A DNA stretch of 64,000 nt from the IMG/VR virus record IMGVR_UViG_3300031952_000001, positions 1-64,000 of that record. The stretch is one strand, 5' to 3'. The notes beneath the pieces are model-generated. The model saw only the letters and a list, made by a program, of their open reading frames with translations. It was not told where the DNA came from and made no database searches. Shown piece after piece: positions 2,320 through 43,721 of this stretch. Position 1 is the first letter of the stretch. Each line of letters begins with the position of its first letter. The translations under genes were made by a program, and so were the position numbers.

Positions 2320-3228
2320 GTGATCATCCAGCCGGGAGTAGAGCAGCCTTCGGTTGCGAGCATGATCGAGCTTGCTCGGACGAACTCGGTTCGCCGGGTG
2401 GACATCGAGCTGCAAGACTCGACCGGGGCCCTTGTCGACATCGACGCCACCCCGGGACCCGGAGGGGAGCCGAACGGCGTTCTCGACCTGGAGATCACCG
2501 ACGTCGGCGGGATGTCGATCTACAAGGAGTCGTACTACCCCCCGACGCTAAGCGTGCTGGAGCCGAGGATCAAGAAGGCCGCTCCCGGCAGGTACTACAT
2601 CGATCTCGGCAAGGTTCCTCACGAGACGGACAACCCGCAGGCGCTGCTCTTCAACTGGCACTCTCGACAGTCCCTCCTTTCCGAGGAGGTCTACCGCACC
2701 CAGGTCGTCGAGGTGGTGTCTCCGAGGATCCTGTCCCTGCTCCCGTCTCTCCGGTTGCTGATCGACAAGACCGTCAAGCCGAACCTCCCGGAGAAATACT
2801 GCTTCATCGGATACACTGACGGGATGCTGATTCTTTTTCTCAAGATGGGTCTTTCAAAAATAAACGAGTACGAGCCGTACCCTGTCTGGGGGCACATCGA
2901 TCACTTCCCCATCGAGCTGTACTCGAACATCCTCCTGCGGGCTGCTCTGTTCCAAGGCATCACGAGCCAGACGCTCTTCTCCATCGATACGGACGTTCCG
3001 CAGTTCTCGGACTCCGGGCATAGTTTCGTCCTTCAGCACGCGACTCCGTTGGCGGCGTTCCTGGACCGACTGCGTGACGAGCTGGACAAGAGCGTGCCCA
3101 ACCTGAAGCGCAAATTCGTAAACAGCGGCACAATATCTATCGAGATGCGATGCGACCTTGCGTTCAGCATGATGCTTTCATCGGCTCCCTATGGATCTTT
3201 GTTCCGAAACCTTTGGGCTGCGATGTAA
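2320..3228 (+). CDS. Putative head-tail adaptor/neck protein
   Basis: 302 aa, N-terminal beta domain plus C-terminal helical domain; position upstream of neck and sheath genes; function inferred from synteny. Confidence 0.45.
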   Translation: MIIQPGVEQPSVASMIELARTNSVRRVDIELQDSTGALVDIDATPGPGGEPNGVLDLEITDVGGMSIYKESYYPPTLSVLEPRIKKAAPGRYYIDLGKVPHETDNPQALLFNWHSRQSLLSEEVYRTQVVEVVSPRILSLLPSLRLLIDKTVKPNLPEKYCFIGYTDGMLILFLKMGLSKINEYEPYPVWGHIDHFPIELYSNILLRAALFQGITSQTLFSIDTDVPQFSDSGHSFVLQHATPLAAFLDRLRDELDKSVPNLKRKFVNSGTISIEMRCDLAFSMMLSSAPYGSLFRNLWAAM

Positions 3229-3257
3229 TAGTTGTTCGATTGGTACTTATGGGTCTC

Positions 3258-3285
3258 TTGACATCGTTCTTTTGATGGTTACATT
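3258..3285 (+). promoter_or_regulatory. sigma70-type promoter upstream of HNH gene (TTGACA-N16-TACATT)
   Basis: Consensus -35 and near-consensus -10 in an AT-rich intergenic region. Confidence 0.5.
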
Positions 3286-3292
3286 AGAGGTC

Positions 3293-4192
3293 ATGGAAGA
3301 CGAACAGAAAAAAGACGACCTTCGAGTGTGCCGGAAGTGCGGGGAACCCAAGGACCTCTCCCAATTCGGAGTGAATCGGCGTACTCAAGACGGTATCCAG
3401 AATTTCTGCAAAACCTGCGTACAGGCCAAGAGCAAAAGGCAATATTACAATACCAATGCGGACAGGCCTCGCCGGTCTCCGAAGCTGAGCGATGAGGAGC
3501 TTTCTCGCAGAAATGCGGCTCGTGCGAAGCGCTGGCGTGAGGAAAAGGGTGAGGTTCTCAACGAGGAGCGGAGGGCCTACTACGAGGCGCACAAAGAAGA
3601 AGTGCGAGGGTCTCAGCAGCGCTACTATCTCCGGAACAAAGAATATTTCCAGGAGCGGAATAAAGAATGGCGTGAAGCTCACAAAGAAGAGCATCGGGAG
3701 AAAAATGCGGAATGGCGGGCTGCGCACCCAGGGTATCGATCTCCGGGAACGCAAGGAAAGACCCTGGAGGGTATAGATCCTGCGTTGAAACGCAACATGC
3801 AGTGCTCTCCGACTGAAAGAAAGAGACGGTACGCAAAGGTTGCTGCGAAGAGCGATCCTGCTACGCACTTGAGGGGTGTTCTGCGGGTTCGGATTAACCA
3901 TGCTCTGCGCTCAGGAAAGAAAACCGGCTCCGCCGTTCGTGATCTCGGCTGCACCGTTGAGGAGCTGAAGACGTACCTGGAGTCCAAGTTCCGCCCACAC
4001 CCGGAGACTGGCGAACTCATGACGTGGCAGAACCACACGACGGATGGCTGGCACATCGATCACATCGTGCCGTTGTCGAGCTTCGACTTGACCGATCCTG
4101 AACAGTTCCGGAAGGCGTGCCACTACACGAATCTCCAGCCGCTCTGGTGGCATGAGAACCTTCAGAAGAGCGCGAAGGTCGAGGCCGCCTGA
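3293..4192 (+). CDS. Freestanding HNH endonuclease with N-terminal CxxC zinc motifs
   Basis: CRKC...FCKTC; C-terminal GWHIDHIVPLS...CHYTNLQPLWWHENLQK HNH motif; start could also be ATG 3275. Confidence 0.85.
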   Translation: MEDEQKKDDLRVCRKCGEPKDLSQFGVNRRTQDGIQNFCKTCVQAKSKRQYYNTNADRPRRSPKLSDEELSRRNAARAKRWREEKGEVLNEERRAYYEAHKEEVRGSQQRYYLRNKEYFQERNKEWREAHKEEHREKNAEWRAAHPGYRSPGTQGKTLEGIDPALKRNMQCSPTERKRRYAKVAAKSDPATHLRGVLRVRINHALRSGKKTGSAVRDLGCTVEELKTYLESKFRPHPETGELMTWQNHTTDGWHIDHIVPLSSFDLTDPEQFRKACHYTNLQPLWWHENLQKSAKVEAA

Positions 4193-26087: not shown

Positions 26088-27518
26088 ATGGTTATCCAGA
26101 GAAAAACAGTAGCTCAGTTCGAGGATCAGCTTTCCAACGGGGTCGCGTCTCGTGACGAGACCATCGATACCTACATCGGCTCGATCCGAGATCTTTTCAT
26201 CACACCGCCCGCTGAGGTCATGAAGAGCGTCCACGACAACATCGTGTATCTCAGCCAGCTGACCAGCATGATCAACGCGGAGCGGTTCAATCCCGAGGAT
26301 CTCGACGCCATCGTCTACAACGAGAACGTCATCCGGTGGACCGGATCAGGGTCGTATTCGATTGTGACCTTCTCGCGCCTGCTGCCTCCGACGACAGACA
26401 TCCCGATCCCGGTAAACTTCCCTCTGTCGACCTCTCAGGATCCTCGGACGGGAACCGTTGTGAACTTCAGGACCATCGAGTCACAGGTCATGTATGGGCC
26501 ACTGACGGTTCCGTCTTCGTCGTACTACAACGCGACGACGGAGCGCTACGAGATCGATGTCGCGGTGGCGAGCGTCGTCGTAGGCACGGAGGCTTCCGTC
26601 GGGGCCTACACCATCACGCAGTTCCGAAGAGCGTTTCCGGACTTCGAGTACGTCACGAACAAGTCGGCGACGACGAGTGGCCGTGGGGTCGAGACGAACA
26701 CCGACTTGGCGATCAGGTACCAGACCCGGATCACCGGCAACCAAGAGGCGACTCCGTCGGGGCTCAAGCTGTTCTCTCTGGACAACTTCAGCAACATCTC
26801 GGATGCCTACGTCGTCTACGGAACCGACGTCAACTTGGAGCGCCACACCTCCGATGCCGGCGCGGTGGACGAGTGGGTCAAGACATCTGCACCACTGACG
26901 CACTCCTACGACACGTACTACAGAGCCTTGCGTGAGCTGATCCCCTTGCCCAAGCAGCCGCTCGTTTCGATCATCTCGGTTTCCAGCGGGGCCACCTACT
27001 ACACCGAGGGTACGGACTTCGAGAAGTCCACGGGTGACGGGATCTACGCCTACAGCGACCGGGGGCACGACGGCATTCGATTCCTCATCGGAGGGGCGGC
27101 CCCCGCGCCCAACGCTCCGTTGAAGATCGTGTACTCCTACAACTCGATGATCAACATCCTCACGGCGTACTACAAGCAGCAGGAGTATTACGTCATGGGC
27201 TCGGACATGCTCTTCCGCTGGGCTCAGCAGAAGAACATTGTCATCGAGGCGGAGCTGAAGGTTGGCTCCGGCAACCCGGACACCGTACTGTCGTTGGTCA
27301 GAGCCAAGATTCTGAGCTACATCAACAACTTGAAGTTGGGTGCTGACGTCGAGGAGTTCGACATTGACTCCCAGGTAGCTCTCGTCGGAGGTGTAGACAA
27401 CTGGGTGTATGTCACTCTGGCTGTGAAGGGCTCTTCTGGCGTGGGTGACATTCCGATAGGTCCGATGGAGTACGCCTACTTGGATGAGGCGGATCTCATC
27501 ATCAGCCTCGTTTCGTAG
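26088..27518 (+). CDS. Baseplate J-like protein
   Basis: GSIRDLFI...DLDAIVYNE...GRGVETNTDLAIR pattern of the baseplate J family. Confidence 0.75.
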   Translation: MVIQRKTVAQFEDQLSNGVASRDETIDTYIGSIRDLFITPPAEVMKSVHDNIVYLSQLTSMINAERFNPEDLDAIVYNENVIRWTGSGSYSIVTFSRLLPPTTDIPIPVNFPLSTSQDPRTGTVVNFRTIESQVMYGPLTVPSSSYYNATTERYEIDVAVASVVVGTEASVGAYTITQFRRAFPDFEYVTNKSATTSGRGVETNTDLAIRYQTRITGNQEATPSGLKLFSLDNFSNISDAYVVYGTDVNLERHTSDAGAVDEWVKTSAPLTHSYDTYYRALRELIPLPKQPLVSIISVSSGATYYTEGTDFEKSTGDGIYAYSDRGHDGIRFLIGGAAPAPNAPLKIVYSYNSMINILTAYYKQQEYYVMGSDMLFRWAQQKNIVIEAELKVGSGNPDTVLSLVRAKILSYINNLKLGADVEEFDIDSQVALVGGVDNWVYVTLAVKGSSGVGDIPIGPMEYAYLDEADLIISLVS

Positions 27519-32619: not shown

Positions 32620-33630
32620 GTGGATCCTTTGATCACATCCAAAAGATGTTCCTCCTGCAAAATGGAGAAGCCTCTTTCTGATTTTGGTTTTAGAAAGAGG
32701 TCCAAGGACGCACATCATTACAAGTGCAAGGTGTGTACGAACCTGTACACGCGGAAAACACGAAGTCCTGATTTTGTATCCACCCGCAGGAAGGTGGAGG
32801 TGGTTGATGGTCTCCTGAAGTGTACTAGGTGTAATGAGATAAAGCCTTTAACTGCGTTTTCGAAGAACCGTAGCAGTCATACAGGTCTTGATTACTGCTG
32901 CAAGGACTGTACCAGGAGGATTTCTAAAACCAGATTGGATAATCTCAGGGTTATTGGAGTTGTGCAGAAAGTTGGTAGGAAAGTTTGTTCACACTGTGGC
33001 GTTGAGAAGGACATTACCCTCTTTAGGATTCTTATTGGCGGGTCTGGAGGAAGATCCAGAGTGTGCAAAGATTGCATTAACTCTTCGGAGCGGGAGCGCC
33101 AAAGCTCACAAAATCACGTCCCGGATCTTCAAGGTACCAAGGTTTGTAGTTCTTGTGGTTTATTGAAAAAGAACACTGAGTTTTATAAGTTCAAACACCA
33201 CAAGGACGGGTTGGATTCTGCATGTAAAGACTGTGTTCAACTACGCAAGAGTAGCTATTTTAGGAAGAACGTGGTAGCCCAGCTTAGATTTAAGATCAGA
33301 CGACGTTTGGGGTACTACGCAAAGCGTAATAAGTGCTTGAATAAAGACTATGCAATTTTGTTTCTTGGGTGTTCTCTTCATGAGTTGCTGTCATACTTAG
33401 AAATTAGGTTTTATTCCGACCCTAGAACCGGGGAGGCTATGACTTGGGATAATTATGGACAGCGGGGTTGGCACATCGATCATATCTACCCCTTGTCCAA
33501 GGTGAATCTTCTTGATGATTTGGAATTTAAGAGGGCTTGTCACTATACGAATTTGCAGCCACTTTGGTGGTGGGAAAATCTTGAAAAAAGTTCTAAAATC
33601 ACTTCGGACTTGAAGTCTGAGGTTGTTTGA
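32620..33630 (+). CDS. Freestanding HNH endonuclease with repeated CxxC zinc modules
   Basis: Four CxxC...CKxC repeats; GWHIDHIYPLS...CHYTNLQPLWWWENLEK; lower GC (26/60 at 32941-33000). Confidence 0.85.
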   Translation: MDPLITSKRCSSCKMEKPLSDFGFRKRSKDAHHYKCKVCTNLYTRKTRSPDFVSTRRKVEVVDGLLKCTRCNEIKPLTAFSKNRSSHTGLDYCCKDCTRRISKTRLDNLRVIGVVQKVGRKVCSHCGVEKDITLFRILIGGSGGRSRVCKDCINSSERERQSSQNHVPDLQGTKVCSSCGLLKKNTEFYKFKHHKDGLDSACKDCVQLRKSSYFRKNVVAQLRFKIRRRLGYYAKRNKCLNKDYAILFLGCSLHELLSYLEIRFYSDPRTGEAMTWDNYGQRGWHIDHIYPLSKVNLLDDLEFKRACHYTNLQPLWWWENLEKSSKITSDLKSEVV

Positions 33631-33640
33631 GGAGGATTCT

Positions 33641-36600
33641 ATGAGAGGTAGCCTCTACCCTAACGGGGTCACTGTTGATCAAGTCGCTCTTCGTCGGACG
33701 GAGCTGAGCAAAGCTCAAGAGATCCTTCGAAACCGCGTTGACTGGACCTGCCGCGGTGTCTTCAGCGGCGGGTTGGTCACGGTGAACCTGCTCGACGACA
33801 CCCGCATCGACATCATGCAGGCGTCTGGATTCGCCCCGAACGGCGAGTACGTCGAGACGGACAGCCCGTACTACAGCATCGCTCTCGCGGACTACGCCGT
33901 GGGGGTCGTGAACTACGTGTGCCTCGTGTACACGGAGGTGGATTCCTACCGTCAGCCCCACGAGAGTGATGGTCAGCGATACTACACCCGGGCGGCGATG
34001 GCTTGGAGGGTCCGTGTCTACAGCGCGGCGCAGTACGCTCTGCTGCCGGCCTCGGACGAGAACCTGGCGAACGACTCGCAGGACCGGATCATCTTCTTCT
34101 CGAAGGTCACCGCGAATGGTGTGGGCATCTCCTTGACGCCGAGCAGCATCACGAGCCCGCGCTCTTTCAACAACATCATGTACACGGTCCCGAGGAAGTG
34201 CGTGACAATCCTCGGCATCGACATCTTGTCAGCGTCCTCGGGGAGCCCCCTCGGAGCCGGCACACTCACGTACGACTTCACCCCCGGGACCCCTCCGACG
34301 TACCAGCTCACCTGGTCGACGTCGAATGGGGCCGGTGCTCCAGTAGCGGTCGCTGCGGACGGCAACTACACCCTGCTCGATGGAGCCGGCGAGTTCATCA
34401 CGGTCAAGGTCGCGCTGACGGTACTTCCGACGTTCGTGGTTGCTACGACCGTCACCGAGACCATCACGATCTTCAATCTGTACTACCAGGAGATGCCGCG
34501 GCTGAGCGCGGAGGACCACCTCCACAGGAACTACATCGGCACAGGCACGATCTCTCCGCAGAACCCCCACGGGAACTCCCTGGACGACTTCTCCGGTGAG
34601 ACACTCTCCATGCTCGACGAGCACCAGGACGTCCTTCACTGCAACGGCATCTGGAGGGGCTCCGCGTCGTCGATCTTCCAGATCACGGTGCTCACCGCCC
34701 CCGTGGCGGACACCTTCAACCTGGTGGCCCCCGCGGGAGGGGACCTGTACTACGTCAACGGCATCAAGCTGGACAGCATCGACATCTCGGTGGGTGTCTC
34801 GATCCTTCCGCCGGTCGTGCAGGGTGCCTACTTCTACGAGATCTGTGTCTCGGACGAGGCGACCGTCGAGTGCAACAAGAAGGCGGCTTATCCTGCGGTG
34901 CGCGCGGTGACCGGTACCTGGATCGTCGACATGAGCAGGGACTACCCCTTCGGGAGCTTTGCGTTGACCTGCACGACGACTCCAGGCCCTTTTACTCCGA
35001 GGGTGTTTACTTGGGATGGTGGAAAACCCGTTACCTTCACTCCACTGTCGGATCCGTCGCAAGCGATACGCCTGTACTCTGCGGACGGCGAGCACTGGAT
35101 CGATCTCTGGGTGAACACCAACCCCAGCGTCGTTCCCGATGAGGCCTTGCCAACGGCTCCTGGCACGGTCACGGACACCATCACGGTCTTCTCATCACTG
35201 ACGGACGGTTCGAACCAGTTCATGCAGATCGGGGCTCTCTCGTACTGGTACGACGCGACATCTGTGAAGTGGGTCCTCGGGTACCATCCTCTGGCTGCCA
35301 ACCGGAACGCGGTCGACAAGCGCATCTGGGGTAACACCGGCACCGAGAACATGGCGACCTGGGCTCTGGAGGACTTGGCGTACCTGCCGAACAACGAGCT
35401 GGGTCGGTCCGGAGCGCTTCTTCGCAGGAATGGTGCGTACAACGAGTTCCAGTACACCTACGGGGGTGCCGGTTTCAACATCTCCGTGAACGGCGGATCT
35501 TTCTACTGCCGGGGTCAGAGAATCTCGGTGAAGTCTACGCAGAGCCTCATTGCGGTGCCGAGTGCGGTGCAGCTGATCTGGGCGGACATGGCCGGAGTGT
35601 ACCACATCCTCAACGTCACGGGGACCTTCGGTGGAGACCTCCAGGCGGCGATGAGGTACGTCCTGGGGTCCACCCAGAACATCCCCTCGGTTTCTGATTT
35701 CTACCACTATTCGGACGCTGGAGATGCTCCTGAGAGGGGCATTTTGCTCTACTGCTTGGTGACCGATGCGACCGACATCGATCCTCTGGGGATCGTCGAC
35801 TTCACGCAGAACGTGAACCGAGTGGACGATCCCTGGTCTGTGGGTTCTCGAATCTCCACGACGGTGAATGCAGTGCACGCGCAGGCGGCTTACGACAACT
35901 TCTTCACGGCCTTTGAGTACGCGAAGTATTCGATGTACGGGACGGAGAACAAGGGGTCGGTCACACTCACAGTGATCGGCACCGTCGAGGTCGGCTTCAA
36001 GGTCACGCAGCCCGAGTATGTGAACGTCCGCGGCACCCGCGGGGTTTCGATCCCCTACAAGAGCATCGTTCGCGTCACCGGTACCGACGCCTGGGGATCT
36101 TGGCTACTGAGCTTCGGTTGCAAGGTTTCAAATCTCAGTGTGTACAATACTTCAACCACACTGCCGGCGATAGGTCTCAACCACTATGCGACCGTGGAGG
36201 AGTGCTTCTTCGTCTCCTCCGGCGGAGAGCCCTTCAGAGCCTCTGCCTCAGGTGCTCTTTCGTGCAACGGTGTAGTTCTTCGGAACAACATTTCTTCGGG
36301 GTCTGCGTTGATTTCCTCGGTCAGTCTTGCGAACGGGTACACCGGGTGGATCATCACGGGGAACGAGGTCCTCGCAGTTCCTTCTGACTCCCGTGCAGCG
36401 ATACAGCTGCTGGGCGCGGAGAAGCTCCTCATTTCGGGAAACATCATTGATGTTCCTAACTCCAATGACCAGCTCGTCAATGCCTCCGGTGGCATCCGTG
36501 TGGGATCCAGCGGGTTCCAGTGTCAGGACGTCACCATCCGCGACAACTACATCTCGGTGGGGAACAACGCGGCCGGTCAGCTGAACTCCGTTGCCGGCAT

Positions 36601-38389
36601 CCATTTGCAAGACGTGTGGTTCGCGACCGTCAGCGGGAACACCGTTCGTAGGTCTTCCGGGTCGGTTACCCAGATCGGTGTTGGGCTTTACCTGGAGGGT
36701 CTCTTGCAGTCTTCCGTTGTGGACAACAAGATCGCCTTCATGGGCGGCGGCATCTATATCGTGGGGTATCTCTATGAGACTGAGATCTCTAGGAACAAGA
36801 TGCAGGGTTTGTTCCATTCGGGGATCAGCGCTTTTGTGAACGACTTCCCGGTGCTGAACATGGCTTACGGCGTCCGCGTGGATGGTAATGATGTTTACAT
36901 GATGCCTCTTAAGGGGTTGACAGGGGGTCTTTTCACCAGTGCAGATCTTTTTGGCGTTGCGGTGTATTTTGATCTCACTCCCGCAAACTCCTCGTTGAGT
37001 GGAGTATCGGTATCGAAGAACTGCGTCTCCGGGATTGGATCTATACTTTCTGGGGCCAGCGTTTACGGCATTATGTTGGGTGTTAATGGGGGTACGGGGT
37101 TTTGCAGATCTCTCAGTATAGATGACAACGTCGTGAACACCCTGGATTCCTCCATTGGAGATTTGGTCGGTATCAATGTTTACGTGTCGGGAATGGCGCA
37201 GGCAGCAGAGCAGGTTTCTTTGAGCAGAAACCATGTGACATTCGCACCCAAAACTACGTCCCCTACAGTGATGGGCATCTACACCGCTGCTCACCTGATC
37301 GGCTCATCCATTAACAACAATACCTCCATTTTGGAGTCTAGTGATGACACTGCTGAAGGTATTGCATTGTACTCTGGGGTCTGGCAGCCCTCCAATACTA
37401 CAGTGTCTGGAAACATTCTTCTGGGACTGTCGGCGGGCGCATACATTATCGCCTCATCATCTCTGAAGATTTCTGATAACATCATCTACGGAAAGGGCGG
37501 AGGTCTCCATGTAGGTGGTGCCCCTACGAAGGGCACTCTCGTTCAAGGAAACAGGATCCAAGTCGATGCGTACATTGAGAGTCCTTATGCTCCCGATGCA
37601 GGCTGGGTGGGGGCGCACTGTCTCAGCGTAGATCTCGGTGCTTCAGGAATAACCTTGAGGGACAACTTCTTGTATCTTAACGGGGTAGATCGCCCCGGTG
37701 CTGGCGTCAACGATGTACCCGACGGAAGCACTTGTGTCACTCTTGTGGACCTGAGTAATGTGTGCATCGATGGATGCAGCATGTATTCCGACACTGCTAC
37801 GGTGGATAACACTGATGGTACGGGGGCCGTAAGAGGGTACCTTTGCCTTTGCAGAGCGGGCCATTCGGGTGCGGGGAAGAAAACTACGATCACGGTTACC
37901 GACTGCATTTTTGATGACAGGGTCGAGGCAGCGGGCACCTCCAGAACGCCACTGTACGGTCTATACATTATACCCGACTTTAATTTTAAACATGATGATG
38001 GGGACGTTCTCTGTGCTTCGATAAAGGGCAACACATTCTTCACTTCCAACACGGATAGGTCCTCTACTTATCATTTTAATGAGGAAGGTCGTCCAGCAAC
38101 AGCTACCCCAGCTCCAGCATTTAGGCCCTATGTAATATATGTTCCATCTACTTATGGTCTCATTTTTGCGGATACGAGATCTCATGTCTACTTTGTTGGG
38201 AATTCCATACACGGGCTACCCTTAACAGAGGATTCCCGCCCCTACGTTTATATGTGTCTCCATGAGGCAGCATTTGGTGGTGGCATTCTTGGGCATTGTA
38301 TCTACGAGCCTGAATCTCGGGTAAACTTCGTGAACCAAAATGGAGAGCCTTTCCCTACCCCGGATTACGCTTGGGCGGTGTTTCCATAA
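33641..38389 (+). CDS. Tail fibre/receptor-binding protein with parallel beta-helix (pectin-lyase-like) C-terminal region (~1582 aa)
   Basis: GGAGGA RBS; repeated I.GN.I / V.NN / I.DN beta-helix rungs from ~36100; last gene of the virion module. Confidence 0.75.
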   Translation: MRGSLYPNGVTVDQVALRRTELSKAQEILRNRVDWTCRGVFSGGLVTVNLLDDTRIDIMQASGFAPNGEYVETDSPYYSIALADYAVGVVNYVCLVYTEVDSYRQPHESDGQRYYTRAAMAWRVRVYSAAQYALLPASDENLANDSQDRIIFFSKVTANGVGISLTPSSITSPRSFNNIMYTVPRKCVTILGIDILSASSGSPLGAGTLTYDFTPGTPPTYQLTWSTSNGAGAPVAVAADGNYTLLDGAGEFITVKVALTVLPTFVVATTVTETITIFNLYYQEMPRLSAEDHLHRNYIGTGTISPQNPHGNSLDDFSGETLSMLDEHQDVLHCNGIWRGSASSIFQITVLTAPVADTFNLVAPAGGDLYYVNGIKLDSIDISVGVSILPPVVQGAYFYEICVSDEATVECNKKAAYPAVRAVTGTWIVDMSRDYPFGSFALTCTTTPGPFTPRVFTWDGGKPVTFTPLSDPSQAIRLYSADGEHWIDLWVNTNPSVVPDEALPTAPGTVTDTITVFSSLTDGSNQFMQIGALSYWYDATSVKWVLGYHPLAANRNAVDKRIWGNTGTENMATWALEDLAYLPNNELGRSGALLRRNGAYNEFQYTYGGAGFNISVNGGSFYCRGQRISVKSTQSLIAVPSAVQLIWADMAGVYHILNVTGTFGGDLQAAMRYVLGSTQNIPSVSDFYHYSDAGDAPERGILLYCLVTDATDIDPLGIVDFTQNVNRVDDPWSVGSRISTTVNAVHAQAAYDNFFTAFEYAKYSMYGTENKGSVTLTVIGTVEVGFKVTQPEYVNVRGTRGVSIPYKSIVRVTGTDAWGSWLLSFGCKVSNLSVYNTSTTLPAIGLNHYATVEECFFVSSGGEPFRASASGALSCNGVVLRNNISSGSALISSVSLANGYTGWIITGNEVLAVPSDSRAAIQLLGAEKLLISGNIIDVPNSNDQLVNASGGIRVGSSGFQCQDVTIRDNYISVGNNAAGQLNSVAGIHLQDVWFATVSGNTVRRSSGSVTQIGVGLYLEGLLQSSVVDNKIAFMGGGIYIVGYLYETEISRNKMQGLFHSGISAFVNDFPVLNMAYGVRVDGNDVYMMPLKGLTGGLFTSADLFGVAVYFDLTPANSSLSGVSVSKNCVSGIGSILSGASVYGIMLGVNGGTGFCRSLSIDDNVVNTLDSSIGDLVGINVYVSGMAQAAEQVSLSRNHVTFAPKTTSPTVMGIYTAAHLIGSSINNNTSILESSDDTAEGIALYSGVWQPSNTTVSGNILLGLSAGAYIIASSSLKISDNIIYGKGGGLHVGGAPTKGTLVQGNRIQVDAYIESPYAPDAGWVGAHCLSVDLGASGITLRDNFLYLNGVDRPGAGVNDVPDGSTCVTLVDLSNVCIDGCSMYSDTATVDNTDGTGAVRGYLCLCRAGHSGAGKKTTITVTDCIFDDRVEAAGTSRTPLYGLYIIPDFNFKHDDGDVLCASIKGNTFFTSNTDRSSTYHFNEEGRPATATPAPAFRPYVIYVPSTYGLIFADTRSHVYFVGNSIHGLPLTEDSRPYVYMCLHEAAFGGGILGHCIYEPESRVNFVNQNGEPFPTPDYAWAVFP

Positions 38390-38399
38390 TCCTATCTTG

Positions 38400-38428
38400 T
38401 TGACATCCCGATCCTCCTTTGCTATATA
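38400..38428 (+). promoter_or_regulatory. sigma70 promoter (TTGACA-N17-TATATA, TG-extended -10)
   Basis: Consensus spacing in the intergenic region; followed by inverted repeat GATCTC-N6-GAGATC (38439-38456). Confidence 0.7.
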
Positions 38429-38467
38429 GTACATGTTGGATCTCCATAGTGAGATCAGGAGGACCCG

Positions 38468-38926
38468 ATGGTTTCTGCGGCTACGACGACGGAGATTCGT
38501 GACCTGCTGCGCGAGCGGATTCTCGCCGCCCTGGAGGCACTCCGTGTGGAACACGACTGGGTGTCCACCGAGATGGTCCAGAAGGTCATCATGATGCAGC
38601 ACGGCATCAACTACTCCCTGTCGAAGGTGGGGAACAACCTGCGGTGCCTCCGAGAGCACGGGGTTGTGGAGGACCAGACGAAGCACGGAACGCGACACTG
38701 GAGCCTTACGGGCCGGGCATACACCCCCGACACCCCTAAGAAGCTCCTCATCAGCTTCCCAGGACCCCTTCACAACATGATCGTGGACTTCTCCCGCCGT
38801 GGAGGCCTCTCGAAGAACGCTTTTGTGGTCAACATGGTAGCCTCCGGGATCCAGCAGCTCGCCGCAGCCCAGTTGGGCTCTAAAAGACGAGAGTCCAAGG
38901 CTGAAGAAGCCTCTCCGGCCTCGTGA
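38468..38926 (+). CDS. Putative transcription regulator: winged HTH + ribbon-helix-helix
   Basis: YSLSKVGNNLRCLREHGVVE...HWSL (wHTH) then KLLISFPGPLHNMIVDFSRRGGLSKNAFVV (RHH-like). Confidence 0.55.
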   Translation: MVSAATTTEIRDLLRERILAALEALRVEHDWVSTEMVQKVIMMQHGINYSLSKVGNNLRCLREHGVVEDQTKHGTRHWSLTGRAYTPDTPKKLLISFPGPLHNMIVDFSRRGGLSKNAFVVNMVASGIQQLAAAQLGSKRRESKAEEASPAS

Positions 38927-38936
38927 TTTTTCCCTC

Positions 38937-38964
38937 TTGACAGCCCCCAGGCCATGGTTATGTT
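38937..38964 (+). promoter_or_regulatory. sigma70 promoter (TTGACA-N16-TATGTT)
   Basis: Intergenic upstream of the lipoprotein; AGGAGG and GGAGG follow. Confidence 0.55.
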
Positions 38965-39008
38965 ACTGGTTGCCAGGAGGGATCTGGCTGAACAAAGGGA
39001 GGTTCGAG

Positions 39009-39494
39009 ATGAAGACGGTTCTGTTGGTCATGGCTCTGGTTCTGTTCGCCGGCTGTGCGGAAGACGGTTCTCTTCTCTTTGATGAGGACGCGGGAGCTGA
39101 CGGCGGGGGTTCCGATTCGGACTCCGATTCCGACTCGGACTCGGACTCGGACTCGGACTCGGACTCGGACTCGGACTCGGACTCGGACTCGGACTCGGAC
39201 AACGACTGCTCGGACGGTTGCGACAACCTGCCGCTGTCCATTTGCGATGAGTACGGGAACTTGGTTCAGTACAACTCGGGAACCTGTGTCGAGGGGGGGT
39301 GCATCTACGCCTTTGAACTTATCAAGTGCGACTATGGGTGCACGGACGCCGGGTCCGAGGAAGACGACTATTGCACAGAGAACTCGGACACGGATGACTG
39401 CAACCCCGACAGCTGTATGGTGGGGTGCACAGATAATGCTTGTGAGGCGGGGGTGTGCATCGACGGCGAATGCGAGTGTTTTGGCTGTCCCTGA
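39009..39494 (+). CDS. Lipoprotein with (Ser-Asp)15 repeat and Cys-rich C-terminal domain (161 aa)
   Basis: Lipobox LFAG|C; SD repeat; multiple Cys in the acidic C-terminal half. Confidence 0.8.
   Translation: MKTVLLVMALVLFAGCAEDGSLLFDEDAGADGGGSDSDSDSDSDSDSDSDSDSDSDSDSDSDSDNDCSDGCDNLPLSICDEYGNLVQYNSGTCVEGGCIYAFELIKCDYGCTDAGSEEDDYCTENSDTDDCNPDSCMVGCTDNACEAGVCIDGECECFGCP
39111..39200 (+). repeat. Hexanucleotide tandem repeat encoding (SD)15, including perfect (TCGGAC)11
   Basis: TCCGAT TCGGAC TCCGAT TCCGAC then TCGGAC x11 (39135-39200). Confidence 0.95.
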
Positions 39495-39531
39495 GTTCCG
39501 CTTCCAACCTCTCGATTCCGATCCTTTCCTG

Positions 39532-39561
39532 TTGACACCACCCCTTCTCTGATCGTAAGGT
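39532..39561 (+). promoter_or_regulatory. sigma70 promoter (TTGACA-N18-TAAGGT)
   Basis: Lies in a 176-nt intergenic region. Confidence 0.5.
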
Positions 39562-39670
39562 TGGTCGTTCGCTTTGTACGTGCTTTTTAAGGCGGTGCAG
39601 AACAACTACACCAAAACTCGTGCCGGATAATTCTGGTGCGTTTTCGGCTATTTGGCCGCTGGAGGATTCG

Positions 39671-40864
39671 ATGTCGGACGAAGCCAACACTGGTGATCTC
39701 GTGGGGTGCCCGGATCCAGAAATCTTCAAGTGCAGCATCTGTGGAAAGGATAATTTCACAAGTGCAAGGTACCTGAAGACGCACATGACGGCGAAGCACT
39801 CGGGGAAGAAAAAGCCCACGGATGGTCCCGTGGAAGCTCCCGGACCCGAGACTGCCACCCCGCCGCCAGCTGATCCACCTCCGGAGGCCCCTGAGGCCAC
39901 CCCGCCGCCGTCTCGGGCGGAGAAACGGAAGGCTTCCGCTTCGGAAACGGCCGCTCAGGTGTCGGAAGTGGCTGCGGTGCCACCGGCCACCCCTCCAGGG
40001 GTCCCTCCTGCGACCCATCTGGATCTCCCGGTGGGCTCTGTCTTGCAGCTCGATGGCCCGACATGGCGGCAGGATGCCGTCACAGGTGCGTGGACCAGCG
40101 CAGCGGTCTCGAAGTTGACCGTACAGGTGTTCAGTAAGGCTGAATCCGCGGGGGACGTGATGCTCCTCTGCCGGGCCGAAGGGGATCCCTCGACTTGGTC
40201 CGTTCAGCAGGCCTACGCGCTCTCCGGTGCCGTGAACATCCTGAAGGTCGCCCCTTCGGTGTTTCCGGTGCCACCGGCCGGTCCTCCGCCGATCCCGGGC
40301 ACCGCTGCGCAGTCCGAGCCCGTCGAGGATCCGGAGAAGGTGCGTGCCGAGCAGGAAGAGCAGGAGCGCCAGCGGCTCGCAGCCGAAGAGGCGAAGCGAC
40401 TCGCGATGGAGGAGAGCAAGAGGGCCGCGGAAGCCGAGCACCAGAAGAGGAACGACCTGGCCGAGTTCCGGCTCATGGCCTCTACCTATCTTGAGAAGCA
40501 AGAGGCTTTCAGTCTTGCCCAAAGAGATTTCGAGTCCTACAGCTCCGCCTACACGAAGCACTTCGCGGACTGCATCCAGAAGTACGGTTCCGAGGGCTGC
40601 CTGGAAGCCGAGGGCTTCGTGGTCCAGATCTCGGATGACCCCGAGGGCTCCCCGTTCCAAGACGAGGCTGCACTCATCGAGTGGTGCCAGGAGTCTGGGA
40701 ACGACGACCTCCTGACCCTGAAGATCGACAAGGTGAAGTGGGCACGCTTCAAGGAGCAGGTCGAGAAGGGTTCTTCTCCGGAAGCAGGAAGGCTGGACGT
40801 TCGAGTGGTTCTTGCGCAGATGGAAGGCGAGCCCCAGAAGAAGCTGTCGATCCGGAAGTTGTAG
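39671..40864 (+). CDS. Hypothetical protein: C2H2 zinc finger, Pro-rich linker, coiled coil, C-terminal domain weakly Gam/Gp157-like
   Basis: GGAGGA RBS; FKCSICG...YLKTHMTAKH; DEAALIEWCQE...LKIDK. Confidence 0.6.
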   Translation: MSDEANTGDLVGCPDPEIFKCSICGKDNFTSARYLKTHMTAKHSGKKKPTDGPVEAPGPETATPPPADPPPEAPEATPPPSRAEKRKASASETAAQVSEVAAVPPATPPGVPPATHLDLPVGSVLQLDGPTWRQDAVTGAWTSAAVSKLTVQVFSKAESAGDVMLLCRAEGDPSTWSVQQAYALSGAVNILKVAPSVFPVPPAGPPPIPGTAAQSEPVEDPEKVRAEQEEQERQRLAAEEAKRLAMEESKRAAEAEHQKRNDLAEFRLMASTYLEKQEAFSLAQRDFESYSSAYTKHFADCIQKYGSEGCLEAEGFVVQISDDPEGSPFQDEAALIEWCQESGNDDLLTLKIDKVKWARFKEQVEKGSSPEAGRLDVRVVLAQMEGEPQKKLSIRKL

Positions 40865-40885
40865 GAGGCGTGGGAACCCGTTTCT

Positions 40886-41040
40886 GTCATGCGCTATCAG
40901 CTACAACTGACGGCTTGTCCGTCTCCTCCCCGGTTTTCCAGACCGGATCGTTGGAGCGAACTTAGGGGGCGCATGACTCGCCCCATCCTCGCTCAGAGCT
41001 TGCCGAGCGAGGATACCGCGCAACCGGATGTTGTGCGCGG
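40886..41040 (-). ncRNA. Predicted TnpB omega-RNA scaffold overlapping the tnpB 3' end (guide follows at 40885 downward)
   Basis: Established TnpB architecture plus the observed right-end hairpin; 5' boundary is a guess. Confidence 0.45.
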
Positions 41041-42103
41041 CGTTGAGATCAGCATGAAGGCTGTGCCCGCAGGCCTTGCAGAGGAAGAGGTTGCCTTGGC
41101 GGTTGGAGGCTTCAGTGTGACCGCATCGAGAGCACCCCTGGCTGGTGTACCGGGGGTCGATCCCCACTACTACCATTCCGAGCCCTTCAGCTTTGTAGGT
41201 GATGAACTTTCGGAGCTGACCGTAGGCCCAACGTCCAATTTCTCGGCGTTGAACTTTGCGGAGCCGGCGATTCCGGATACCTTCGAGGTCTTCGATGGCG
41301 ATCACAGGGCATCCTGTCCTCTCGGCGAAGGTGACCACTGCCTTGCCGACCTCGTGATTGACTGCTCGCATGAATCGCGCCTCTCGGCCAGACAGCCGTT
41401 TGAGGACCTTAGCGACGGAGCGCGTCGGGTGCTCTGCCTTTCTCTTTTGGAGAGACGCGCGAACATTCGAGTATCGATCACGAAGATGCTTGGTGTGCCC
41501 ACCCTTGCGCATCCAGTGGCGTTTGCCATCTGTGGCGCAGGCGAGGACGTTGATGCCGCGGTCTACGCCGATGACGGCGTCGTTCGGGGCTGTTCTTTGT
41601 TCAACCTCCTTCTTGAAGCTGAGGGTCAGGAAAACGTGCTTCCTGGACACCGAGAGGCGACCATCCCCAAGATTCCAGTTGTTCAACTTGTCTTCGAGGT
41701 CTGGAGGTCCCTGGAAGGGAACTGCCTTGAAACGTCCGTCGACCGTCCAGATAGAGAGTCCGGATGCGCGCAGGGAGACGTCGCGCCCGCGTGTCCCTCC
41801 TTGCAGTATGACGGCTTGTTTTCGGAATTGGCAAGGGGCTTTGGGGCTGCGCTTGTTAGAACGGATGGCCGCATACTCACTGGCGACATGTCGTATGCAG
41901 GAGCCAGCAAGTTGGGCAGACAAACCGACTTCCTTAGCGGGTCTGTAAGCCAATTTTTGAAGTCGAATGGCATTCGACAAACAGCCGTTTTCAAAAGCGA
42001 TCCTGCTCACGAGGTTGCAGGCTTCGGTCCAAGTATTAAGTGTTCGAACAGCAGCTTCTCGGGGCAGGTTGATTTTGATTTTGACTGTTCTCGCTATTTC
42101 CAT
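40901..42103 (-). CDS. tnpB: RNA-guided endonuclease TnpB (400 aa)
   Basis: RuvC-I VIGVDRGI, RuvC-II IAIEDL, zinc finger CSRCG...CKACG, RuvC-III HADLNAAHNI; start MEIARTVKIKI. Confidence 0.93.
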   Translation of the reverse strand: MEIARTVKIKINLPREAAVRTLNTWTEACNLVSRIAFENGCLSNAIRLQKLAYRPAKEVGLSAQLAGSCIRHVASEYAAIRSNKRSPKAPCQFRKQAVILQGGTRGRDVSLRASGLSIWTVDGRFKAVPFQGPPDLEDKLNNWNLGDGRLSVSRKHVFLTLSFKKEVEQRTAPNDAVIGVDRGINVLACATDGKRHWMRKGGHTKHLRDRYSNVRASLQKRKAEHPTRSVAKVLKRLSGREARFMRAVNHEVGKAVVTFAERTGCPVIAIEDLEGIRNRRLRKVQRREIGRWAYGQLRKFITYKAEGLGMVVVGIDPRYTSQGCSRCGHTEASNRQGNLFLCKACGHSLHADLNAAHNIRLRGILARQALSEDGASHAPPKFAPTIRSGKPGRRRTSRQL

Positions 42104-42113
42104 CACATCCCCA

Positions 42114-42142
42114 AGTCTAATCATTCTGTCGGAATTTGTCAA
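42114..42142 (-). promoter_or_regulatory. sigma70 promoter of tnpB (TTGACA-N17-TAGACT)
   Basis: Minus strand reads TTGACAaattccgacagaatgatTAGACT, 10 nt before the ATG. Confidence 0.75.
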
Positions 42143-42173
42143 GTGGGCTTTTTTCCGGTTGACAGGATTCAGC

Positions 42174-43721
42174 ATGCCTAGAGTTTTACTTATAGATGGA
42201 AATCCTTTCCTCTGGCGTGCTGCGCACTCCAGTCCGATGGAGATGGTCGCGAACAAGATCCTGACCTACATCTTCGAGGTCTTGGGCCAGTTCACCCCCG
42301 ACGATATGATCATCTGCTGGGACCGCGGAAAGTCGCGGTGGCGCAGCGAGCTGTACGAGGACTACAAGGCCCACCGCCTCCAGCAGAAGAGGGACAGCGA
42401 CCTGGACCTCGAAGCTCTCAACGAGCAGGGGATCCTCGTACAGCGCTACTTGACCTCGGTCGGGGTTCGCCAGGTGTTGGTCTCCGGCGTCGAGGCGGAC
42501 GACACCCTCGCCTGGCTGTCGGACCACTTCAAGAGCCTCCCCGGGGACTGGCACATCGTGCTCGTGACCGGGGACCGGGACTTGTGGCAGCTCGTCGACT
42601 TCAAGCTCAACGTCTGGGACCACCAGCGCCAGCTCCTCGTCACCCCGGGGGTCGTCGAGGAGGACCTCGGGGTGCCTCCGGACAGGATCGCCGACTTCAA
42701 GGCTCTCGTCGGGGACCCCTCCGACAACCTTCCCGGGGTGAAGCAGGTCGGAGAGAAGACCGCGGCCAAGCTGCTGAAGAAGTTCGGCAGTCTCGGGGAG
42801 ATCCTGAGTCTTGAGAACGTGGAGTTCTTGGAGAAGCGGAAGACGACCGCCCGGGTCCTCCCTGAGGGTGAATTCGTCGCGGAAATGTACCGCCTCGTGA
42901 AGCTGCCGACCTTGCGGGAGGCCGCCGAGTGCCTTTCGAAGGAGGAGCATGATCTTCTCGTCGAAAACCTCACGGTTCCGCTGTCGAGGGACGCCTTCCG
43001 GTCGCAGGTGTTGTCGGAGCGGATCGGCCCTACGTTCCTCACGAGCGTAGGGCGGCTCCCAGCCTACTCTTCGGACCTGACGGGCATGGTGGCGTGCATG
43101 GATCAGAACAGCGGTCAGAATCGGTCCTGGGCCTCCCTGGGGGAGGTCGACTTGGCGATCTCGCAGTGCAACCGGTGCGCCTTGCGGAAGGACTGCGATC
43201 CGGAGGGCCCAACCTACCCCGAGGGCTCGTCCGACCGGCAGATCATGATCCTCGGGAGGAACCCCGGGCTCCAGGAGCGGCGATACGGTCAGCCGTTCTT
43301 CCCTGAGGCTCCTGCCGGCGGTCGGCTGGATCGGTTCTTGGAGGAGGCCGGCATCGACCGGCGGGAGTGCTGGATCACGAACACCTGCAAGTGCTACTCC
43401 CAGGACGACCGCCCGCCGACCTACCCCGAGATCCTGCTCTGCCTGCCGTACCTGAGGGCCGAAATCGACCTCTTGAAGCCCAAGCTGATCATCGCTTTCG
43501 GAAACGAGGCGATGATGGCTGTAACTCCGTACAGGAGCAGGGTCACGAAGCACTGCGGGGAGATCCTGGAAAACCCTGAGGGCCTCATAGGGCCCATCGA
43601 GGCCTACGTCGCCATCAGCCTGCACCCGTCAGCCGCGTGTCGGTCGCCGCAGAACGACAGAGACGTGGAGTACGCTGCCACGGTGGTCCATGACTTTTTA
43701 GCGAAAAGGACGACAAAGTGA
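42174..43721 (+). CDS. Fusion of 5'-3' exonuclease/flap endonuclease and family-4-like uracil-DNA glycosylase (515 aa)
   Basis: LLIDG, YKAHR, GVEADD, TGDRDL, GDPSDNLPGV..VGEKTA (FEN); CNRC, GRNPG, PFF, NTCKC, HPSA (UDG with 4 Fe-S Cys). Confidence 0.88.
   Translation: MPRVLLIDGNPFLWRAAHSSPMEMVANKILTYIFEVLGQFTPDDMIICWDRGKSRWRSELYEDYKAHRLQQKRDSDLDLEALNEQGILVQRYLTSVGVRQVLVSGVEADDTLAWLSDHFKSLPGDWHIVLVTGDRDLWQLVDFKLNVWDHQRQLLVTPGVVEEDLGVPPDRIADFKALVGDPSDNLPGVKQVGEKTAAKLLKKFGSLGEILSLENVEFLEKRKTTARVLPEGEFVAEMYRLVKLPTLREAAECLSKEEHDLLVENLTVPLSRDAFRSQVLSERIGPTFLTSVGRLPAYSSDLTGMVACMDQNSGQNRSWASLGEVDLAISQCNRCALRKDCDPEGPTYPEGSSDRQIMILGRNPGLQERRYGQPFFPEAPAGGRLDRFLEEAGIDRRECWITNTCKCYSQDDRPPTYPEILLCLPYLRAEIDLLKPKLIIAFGNEAMMAVTPYRSRVTKHCGEILENPEGLIGPIEAYVAISLHPSAACRSPQNDRDVEYAATVVHDFLAKRTTK

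Follow-up and report, generated by a model that had tools for sequence, protein, structure and literature searches.

The 64,000-nucleotide stretch described here (the window) makes up the first 64 kb of an IMG/VR virus record with a length of 211,982 bp (IMGVR_UViG_3300031952_000001; 60% G+C). On its plus strand, 620 nt downstream from the gene of a beta-helix tail spike and with one small gene between them, lies a gene for a lipoprotein precursor (P0001). The protein consists of a signal peptide ending in a lipobox, an acidic tether with a long Ser-Asp tract, and two Cys-rich modules that form its head (Table 1). It is an accessory gene, under purifying selection, of a clade of ~200-kb sediment phages; the head is replaced as a cassette, and promoter, ribosome-binding site (RBS) and signal peptide stay constant. 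The lipobox, the segment DAGADGGG (residues 27–34), the (SD)15 tract with its (TCGGAC)11 run, the acidic Cys-rich domain and the sigma-70-like promoter, which an initial annotation had described, are all present. Translations were made without an alternative genetic code.

Table 1. Features of the lipoprotein gene and of other genes in the window
Feature	Position	Strand	Details
Promoter, sigma-70-like	38937..38964	+	TTGACA-16-TATGTT; scan, 10/12 matches
Ribosome-binding site	38997..39002	+	GGGAGG, 6 nt ahead of ATG
Coding sequence (CDS), lipoprotein precursor P0001	39009..39494	+	161 aa, stop codon included; stop-free translation, orthologues, dN/dS 0.16
Signal peptide	39009..39056	+	MKTVLLVMALVLFAG, then C (lipobox LFAG/C); Cys16 codon 39054-39056
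Acidic tether	39057..39206	+	residues 17-66; presumably disordered; net charge ~-22
(SD)15 tract	39111..39200	+	residues 35-64; last 11 units perfect (TCGGAC)11 at 39135-39200
Module 1	39207..39374	+	residues 67-122; one copy of 47-aa Cys repeat; predicted long beta-hairpin; profile match at 71-113
Module 2	39399..39491	+	residues 131-161; CS-alpha/beta (scorpion-toxin/defensin-like) knot
Endonuclease VII/HNH-like protein	3191-4192
Baseplate_J match, weak	26088-27518
Beta-helix tail spike	33623..38389	+	1,588 aa; Pfam Beta_helix and NosD
Winged-helix regulator-like gene	38468..38926	+	152 aa; upstream of the lipoprotein gene; phrog_2440, E 1e-4
C2H2-finger/coiled-coil gene	39671..40864	+	downstream of the lipoprotein gene; no membrane segment; directly after the regulator in the distant relative L009

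Export signals, tether and Cys-rich modules

The N-terminus has the features of a lipoprotein precursor, with K2, a hydrophobic stretch (residues 3–13) and the lipobox L12-F-A-G-C16. The region LFAGCAEDGS is unchanged in all five alleles of the protein, which elsewhere are 54–78% identical. In M. xanthus, a Lys at position +2 is a signal for the inner membrane and an Ala at +7 a signal for the matrix (PMC3222651); the phage lipoprotein has Ala at +2 and Leu at +7, and thus neither signal. The mature part (146 residues) contains 16 Cys besides the lipid-modified Cys16, 44 Asp or Glu, one Lys and no Arg (net charge about −43), with 2% Pro. Scans of Pfam, PHROGs and NCBIfam give solely compositional matches to the SD tract; no relative turned up when the Cys domain was used for a word search, when viral contigs were scanned, or when 50,697 phage records were searched by tblastn. 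The reading frame is real, since the orthologues retain every aligned Cys, the ratio of nonsynonymous to synonymous substitution rates (dN/dS) is 0.16, and residues 71–113 match the profile of a bacterial repeat. In the separate parts of the protein dN/dS is between 0.11 and 0.21 (Nei–Gojobori, window vs. L002), which points to purifying selection.

Across four phage lineages the −35 hexamer and the RBS are invariant, and the −10 hexamer retains TAnnnT. In the whole genome there are 27 sites of the form TTGACA-N15-18-TAnnnT (19 of them on the plus strand) vs. the ~2–3 expected from 73 occurrences of TTGACA, an enrichment of about 10-fold. Because the observed sites far exceed this expectation, the promoter type appears to be used by the phage, and the 27 sites are probably the set of its host-polymerase promoters. 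Promoter-like TTGACA sites occur at 38400, 38937 and 39532, one for each of three consecutive small genes; the first (TTGACA-17-TATATA) belongs to the winged-helix regulator gene. The 5′ untranslated region of this gene contains a conserved inverted repeat, GCCAG-N7-CTGGC (38972–38988), upstream of the lipoprotein start codon. Its folding at the RNA level does not surpass that of shuffled sequences (z 0.06), and it could be an operator for the adjacent regulator.

Thirty of the 50 tether residues belong to the SD tract. The SD array has a Tandem Repeats Finder (TRF) score of 147, with every other array of the window at 57 or below. The (TCGGAC)11 run is far beyond chance because no other perfect tandem repeat (unit 3–12 nt, at least five copies) occurs in the whole 211,982-bp genome. 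The initial annotation had expected such hexamers to slip in frame, and two otherwise identical assemblies, with (SD)15 and (SD)14, bear this out. The second is L004, a contig of 2,012 bp that comes from a different sample in this sediment series and is identical to window positions 38041–40052 save for one missing hexamer, so that its protein has 159 residues; tract length, therefore, varies in nature. Logan contigs from four sediment runs all break within the hexamer tract. No further length variant appeared in a pattern scan of viral contigs (a scan that possibly lacked the record of the window itself). The other alleles have shorter D-S/D-T tracts with imperfections, and the distance from Cys16 to the first Cys of the domain varies between 31 and 50 residues. 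Slippage of the tether probably amounts to noise, nearly neutral as long as the length stays in a tolerated range, and not to a switch; neutral slippage accounts for a difference of one unit just as well as a tunable stalk would.

A long (SD)n between an anchor and a folded domain, encoded by a slippage-prone repeat, is also seen in the staphylococcal Sdr/Clf MSCRAMM proteins. There, however, the anchor is a C-terminal LPXTG, whereas the phage protein has an N-terminal lipid and the phage organism is of Gram-negative type. The NCBIfam match (26 bits vs. cut-offs of 1,000–2,500, with 1,700 for SdrC) covers residues 35–66 alone, far from the whole protein, and is an effect of composition; the A domain and LPXTG anchor of these adhesins are missing.

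What had been taken for a single Cys-rich domain is indeed Cys-rich and acidic, and is better described as two modules, a Myxococcota-type repeat followed by a knot of the cysteine-stabilized alpha/beta type (CS-alpha/beta). For the first module, a profile built from 65 bacterial repeat units matches residues 71–113 with 38 bits (E 3.5e-13). The repeat consensus, CDSPPASTCKDATTLRTYEASGTCSAGACSYASTETTCEFGCEAGAC, has 47 residues, a Cys spacing C-x7-C-x13/14-C-x4-C-x8-C-x3-C and a PP/L-x-x-Y core, and module 1 shows both. In an exhaustive phmmer search, 15 of the 17 matches are long proteins with 5–10 tandem units of 47 residues; the matches that identify module 1 are P0003–P0018. The phage proteins do not form such arrays: a single unit, lacking the DPCxGVxC linker, is present in P0001 and P0002, and two units in L005, L006 and P0141 (the repeat profile matches the L005 and L006 proteins twice each). 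Pfam contains no model of the 47-residue repeat, and the PDB no structure related to it by sequence. In the AlphaFold2 (AF2) model of module 1, strands are formed by residues 84–94 and 97–106, with a predicted local distance difference test (pLDDT) of 93–96.

A fold search with module 1 gives Z 2.5–3.0 to chitin-binding domains of the CBM14/Avr4 type. Such a likeness would suit a tethered glycan binder, in which module 1 holds peptidoglycan, exopolysaccharide or O-antigen and might shield the receptor or the cell wall from rival spikes or lysins; so would the Atlas structure neighbours, among them Myxococcota M23 peptidases and amidases with Cys-rich regions, and the beta-helix spike nearby, which suggests a polysaccharide receptor. 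On the other hand, Z ~3 is within the noise of that search, no solved structure matches by sequence, and the extreme negative charge and few aromatics are untypical of CBM14. We regard this role as rather improbable.

In module 2 the Cys spacing is C131-x4-C136-x3-C140-x9-C150-x4-C155-x-C157 plus one extra Cys pair, and P0002 has the same spacing. The six Cys (CxxxC and CxC) fit the published CS-alpha/beta expression, CX(2,18)CX(3)CX(2,12)CX(4,17)CXC (PMC11561630). The AF2 model predicts a helix (133–142), which bears the CxxxC, packed on a hairpin of two strands (147–151 and 154–158), which bears the CxC, with pLDDT 87–89. With Foldseek, the top rows are nearly all short K+ channel toxins of scorpions (TM 0.7–0.89, rmsd 0.5–1.5 Å, 28–32 residues), the match to BmBKTx1 reaching a target TM of 0.89 and an rmsd of 0.5 Å over 28 residues; the E-values are poor, as expected for 30 residues. 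The top VIA rows are scorpion toxins and nasonin. In a sequence search of the PDB (E ≤10), all 22 matches are CS-alpha/beta peptides (best E 0.049), and phmmer gives a match to the lepidopteran X-tox Heli-7-tox, with identical Cys spacing. None of the curated Pfam and NCBIfam models (Toxin_2, Defensin_2, Gamma-thionin) matches module 2 even at E 10. The module is thus best called CS-alpha/beta-like in predicted fold only, a likeness that may stem from homology or from convergence, and no toxin or defensin activity is to be read into it.

The members of the superfamily used for comparison (BmBKTx1, BmKTX, nasonin, X-tox, xanthusin-1) share with module 2 the Cys spacing and the predicted helix and beta-hairpin. 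Unlike them, the phage knot is the C-terminal domain of a lipoprotein and not a free peptide, is acidic, carries an extra Cys pair and is encoded by a phage. To our knowledge, a CS-alpha/beta knot has not been described before in a phage. The papers on bacterial defensins cited here do not mention phages; bacterial cis-defensins are known, largely from Myxococcota (PMC11561630; PMC8819291). These, together with fold and Cys pattern, would speak for an anchored or released defensin-like peptide, antimicrobial or channel-blocking, acting against competitors. But the antimicrobial and channel-blocking members are cationic, whereas residues 131–161 contain neither Lys nor Arg and have a net charge of −6; three of the five alleles lack the knot and yet the gene is retained; and no Pfam defensin or toxin model matches. 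Such an effector is the least probable of the roles considered.

Alleles, head exchange and the tail spike

Five alleles of the lipoprotein are known in related phages, plus the one-hexamer variant. Besides P0001, they are P0002, a 151-aa orthologue found in the exhaustive search (54% identity over the domain, E 7e-24), and three recovered through locus and word searches: P0142 (180 aa; the same protein in L005, L007 and L008), the L006 protein (176 aa) and P0141 (177 aa). All share the N-terminus up to LFAGCAEDGS. The number of Cys after the lipobox is always even (16, 14, 16, 16, 16), and every aligned Cys is kept. Two types of head occur: the repeat followed by the knot in P0001 and P0002, and two repeats with no knot in P0142, L006 and P0141.

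In all five cases the gene is flanked by the winged-helix regulator-like gene and the C2H2-finger/coiled-coil gene. The regulator is the conserved anchor of the locus, with 89.5–95% amino acid identity to the related phages (96% in the best tblastn segment) vs. 54–59% for the lipoprotein. At the DNA level, L005, L006 and L008 align with the window at 83–91% identity as far as 39183; the alignment resumes at 39522, and the interval in between shows no similarity. In contigs of the sequencing runs X2 and X4, positions 39139–39524 are replaced by 416 different letters, and in X2 the upstream flank shows no difference until 39059, three bases past the Cys codon of the lipobox. In the pair formed by the window and L002, the synonymous substitution rate (dS) is 1.9 in the lipoprotein gene vs. 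0.39 in the adjacent regulator. A value so far above that of the neighbour argues for exchange with a diverged pool of alleles and not for fast evolution in place.

Only one other block near the lipoprotein gene is non-homologous, and it is formed by the C-terminal half of the tail spike. Over the first 840 residues, the DNA of the spike is 84–86% identical to that of the relatives; in the C-terminal half (~36148–38389), where Beta_helix and NosD match, it shows no similarity to them, a swap of a receptor-binding cassette. A prediction of a complex between this half and the head of the lipoprotein gave a score of 0.00, evidence neither way.

In L009, a more distant relative of 192 kb, the lipoprotein gene is missing and the regulator is followed directly by the zinc-finger gene, so the lipoprotein gene is an accessory gene (a "moron"). 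This absence, the lack of a known function and a microsatellite that expands freely might suggest a selectively neutral passenger, in which a piece of some host lipoprotein gene is carried along and plays no part in infection. Against it stand the dN/dS of 0.11–0.21 in each part, the conservation of all aligned Cys and their even number in every allele, and a promoter, an RBS and a lipobox that are invariant across diverged lineages. A passenger of this kind is very improbable.

Surrounding genes and the probable host

The phage origin of the window, which the initial annotation had stated, is confirmed by a baseplate-J-like gene, the beta-helix tail spike, a DNA polymerase A, an SNF2 helicase and a 5′–3′ exonuclease. 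The large structural open reading frames (ORFs) of window positions 1–33000 (770–1,200 aa) have no match in Pfam or PHROG apart from two exceptions, Baseplate_J and endonuclease VII/HNH. The phage lineage is essentially uncharacterised, with most of its structural ORFs outside any Pfam or PHROG family. No Rfam match occurs in the window.

Downstream, an IS200/IS605-type TnpB element (40864–42175; ORF 40901–42256 on the minus strand, with Cas12f1-like TNB and OrfB_IS605 domains) separates the zinc-finger gene from the exonuclease gene, and a promoter-like TTGACA lies at 42142 on the minus strand. The element is also present in L005 (protein P0021, 99% identical). It is precisely missing from the close relatives L006 and L008, and its insertion is therefore recent. 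Next to it, a single ORF of 584 residues (41967–43721) joins the 5′–3′ exonuclease, with both Pfam domains, to a domain of the uracil-DNA-glycosylase superfamily; the fusion is also kept in the distant relative L009 (519 aa).

Beyond the window, a second secreted Cys-rich ORF (G000:C1:92342-92893, plus strand) has 183 residues, 16 Cys and a lipobox-like AIGSC, and weakly resembles the Myxococcota repeat proteins (E 2e-7). Apart from this ORF and P0001, the 212-kb genome has no lipobox candidate of at least 50 residues. A small serine recombinase (resolvase domain, 331-aa frame) is found at G000:C1:94025-94465.

Most phage lipoproteins of Gram-negative hosts are outer-membrane spanins (o-spanins). 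The phage was searched for three endolysin families (PF00959, PF01510 and PF01464) and none was found, so the lysis cassette is unplaced. With no other convincing lipobox ORF in the genome, the lipoprotein could be taken for an o-spanin subunit or another lysis accessory. Yet neither neighbour (winged-helix, zinc-finger/coiled-coil) has a membrane segment, as an adjacent inner-membrane spanin (i-spanin) gene should encode; the mature part, with 146 residues and 2% Pro, is long and Cys-rich and has two confidently predicted modules, where a short, Pro-rich and largely unstructured one is expected; the C-terminal module that would be needed for contact with the i-spanin is swapped with no co-varying partner nearby; and L009 does not have the gene at all. 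A function in lysis is thus highly unlikely.

According to the initial annotation, Cys-rich lipoproteins with D-S/D-T repeats are common in Myxococcota-like deltaproteobacteria. This holds, and homologues do exist in the host group it had predicted, as Myxococcota repeat lipoproteins. A pattern scan with the linker motifs of the repeat, over one genome per species in 185,579 species, returned 79 loci, nearly all of Myxococcota, with two outliers in archaeal metagenome-assembled genomes (MAGs). The taxa are Polyangiaceae, Archangium, Myxococcaceae, Haliangium, Anaeromyxobacteraceae, Bradymonadales and MAGs labelled "Deltaproteobacteria". In these loci 80 ORFs contain 2–15 repeats, 44 of them with a lipobox-like N-terminus, and in five (L071, L028, L074, L070 and L079) a lipobox, a long (D-T/D-S/D-A)n and the repeats follow each other as in the phage protein. 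Among the bacterial matches L071 is the best, with an identity of 33% to P0001 (202 aa) and of 48% to P0002 (88 aa). Other domains in the Myxococcota repeat proteins are PKD, beta-helix/PMP and RCC1 propeller, of the kind seen in surface adhesins. A host origin of the phage gene, also proposed in the initial annotation, is plausible as an old event; a recent one does not agree with a best bacterial match of 33–48% identity and with the lack of any bacterial equivalent containing both modules.

Hexamer tracts like that of the phage are widespread in the same group. Among 401 sampled Myxococcota genomes (the only ones searched), 247 match the searched region, and nearly all of the places listed are the hexamer tract, at 80–96% identity, in a frame that is not always Ser-Asp. 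(TCGGAC)n-like tracts of 60–110 nt are present in most of the 401 genomes (e.g., L092–L095); in L092 the tract reads (DS)17 within a long D-A/D-S linker that precedes a different Cys-rich domain. Dozens of unrelated contigs with (TCGGAC)n-like tracts also occur in four sediment metagenomes. When 20 kb of the phage were compared with the 401 genomes for spacer-like or prophage matches, almost only hexamer tracts were found, plus weak homologues of replication genes. The baseplate protein has no match in three Myxococcota genomes. TnpB was tried as a host marker and set aside: its relatives are at most 80% identical and of mixed taxonomy, with no host signal. On balance, Myxococcota are the best inference for the host; they are the probable host, on indirect grounds.

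The unnamed Myxococcota repeat lipoproteins (e.g., MBW2276481.1; L071, L028, L074) form a family with no Pfam model or known function. They share the lipobox, the acidic (D-S/T/A)n and the repeat with the phage protein, but have 2–15 repeats and large C-terminal PKD, beta-helix or RCC1 regions, whereas one repeat or two, without any effector domain, make up the phage version. The phage protein could be a mimic of the host surface, which copies anchor, tether and first repeat of these adhesin-like lipoproteins and alters cell–cell contact, matrix binding or kin recognition; it might even reach neighbouring cells by outer-membrane exchange, instead of blocking phages. The common layout in the five loci named above and the PKD, beta-helix/PMP or RCC1-propeller domains borne by such proteins agree with this, and a hypervariable head suits recognition functions. 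But the phage protein is without any of the C-terminal effector domains of the bacterial proteins, the best identity is only 33–48%, and outer-membrane exchange by the host would have to be assumed. Mimicry is, all in all, unlikely, if somewhat less so than glycan binding.

Possible role in exclusion and significance

The gene lies beside the tail spike, and spike and head vary in parallel; for these two reasons a role in superinfection exclusion, or another receptor-related role, is favoured, as one possibility that the initial annotation had put forward. Early timing, surface exposure and glycosylation, likewise suggested there, may apply by analogy and in view of the gene's position. It would resemble Llp and Cor in action, though unrelated to them, and we propose it tentatively, as a reading that could well be wrong. 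In such a mechanism, host RNA polymerase would transcribe the lipoprotein gene after infection from its own sigma-70-type promoter. After export, the product would receive its lipid at Cys16 and reach the outer membrane as its default destination. Its head, oxidised in the periplasm, would swing on the flexible tether and bind a variable component of the envelope. The head would then mask or disable something that an incoming phage needs, with superinfection exclusion or protection of the progeny as the result.

The Llp protein of T5 is a small outer-membrane lipoprotein, made early after infection, that blocks the receptor FhuA (PMC9586334; bioRxiv 10.64898/2026.03.26.714494). With T5 Llp and with Cor of T1/phi80/N15-like phages, the present protein has in common that it is a small phage lipoprotein, predicted in the outer membrane, with its own promoter, encoded beside a receptor-binding protein gene, presumably transcribed on its own and non-essential across relatives. 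In contrast to them, it is about twice as long, has a 50-residue acidic repeat tether, eight predicted disulfides and a head swapped as a cassette, and shows no sequence or profile similarity to them; the neighbouring receptor-binding protein is a beta-helix spike here and not a FhuA binder.

Several points weigh against this proposal. Neither by sequence nor by profile (PHROGs, Pfam and NCBIfam) does the protein resemble any exclusion protein known so far. The receptor is probably a polysaccharide, because the tail spike is a beta-helix protein, and a polysaccharide cannot be masked by a 15-kDa lipoprotein in the way Llp plugs FhuA. The co-variation of spike and head comes from a single independent pair of lineages, since L005 and L008 belong to the same lineage. 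The X2 contig reflects either recombination or a chimeric assembly from strains that occur together, and misassembly could in principle account for (SD)14. Where the protein is localised, and that it is lipidated, is predicted from the sequence. The phage may be lytic or temperate: no tyrosine integrase was found in its genome, which has a single small serine recombinase.

Phage lipoproteins encoded beside receptor-binding genes are of an already known kind. What is new is the architecture, which joins a tether encoded by a microsatellite to a Cys repeat of Myxococcota and to a CS-alpha/beta knot, together with the interchangeable head and the presence of a CS-alpha/beta-like domain in a phage. 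More speculatively, the protein may be the first member of a new class, factors for exclusion or for recognition in jumbo phages of Myxococcota, in the form of a lipid-anchored "knottin display" with interchangeable disulfide-rich heads, either a Myxococcota Cys repeat or a CS-alpha/beta knot, shuffled along with the receptor-binding specificity, on a microsatellite tether, and would at the same time carry the first phage-borne CS-alpha/beta domain; we hold this bolder proposal to be distinctly less probable than an exclusion role as such.

For the biology of these phages, the locus gives a concrete lead to a host, Myxococcota, for an otherwise unrecognisable 212-kb lineage with structural genes mostly outside PHROG and Pfam, and it defines in the bacteria an uncharacterised, Pfam-less family of Myxococcota surface lipoproteins with a Cys repeat. 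The bacterial (Myxococcota) origin of the CS-alpha/beta fold and its spread to eukaryotes are debated, and, if the assignment of module 2 is true, phages would be possible carriers of that fold. With its export and anchor signal constant, the locus shows three layers of variation, the presence or absence of the gene, the exchange of the head cassette and the slippage of the tether, and it is a good system in which to study how phages diversify accessory proteins targeted to the envelope.

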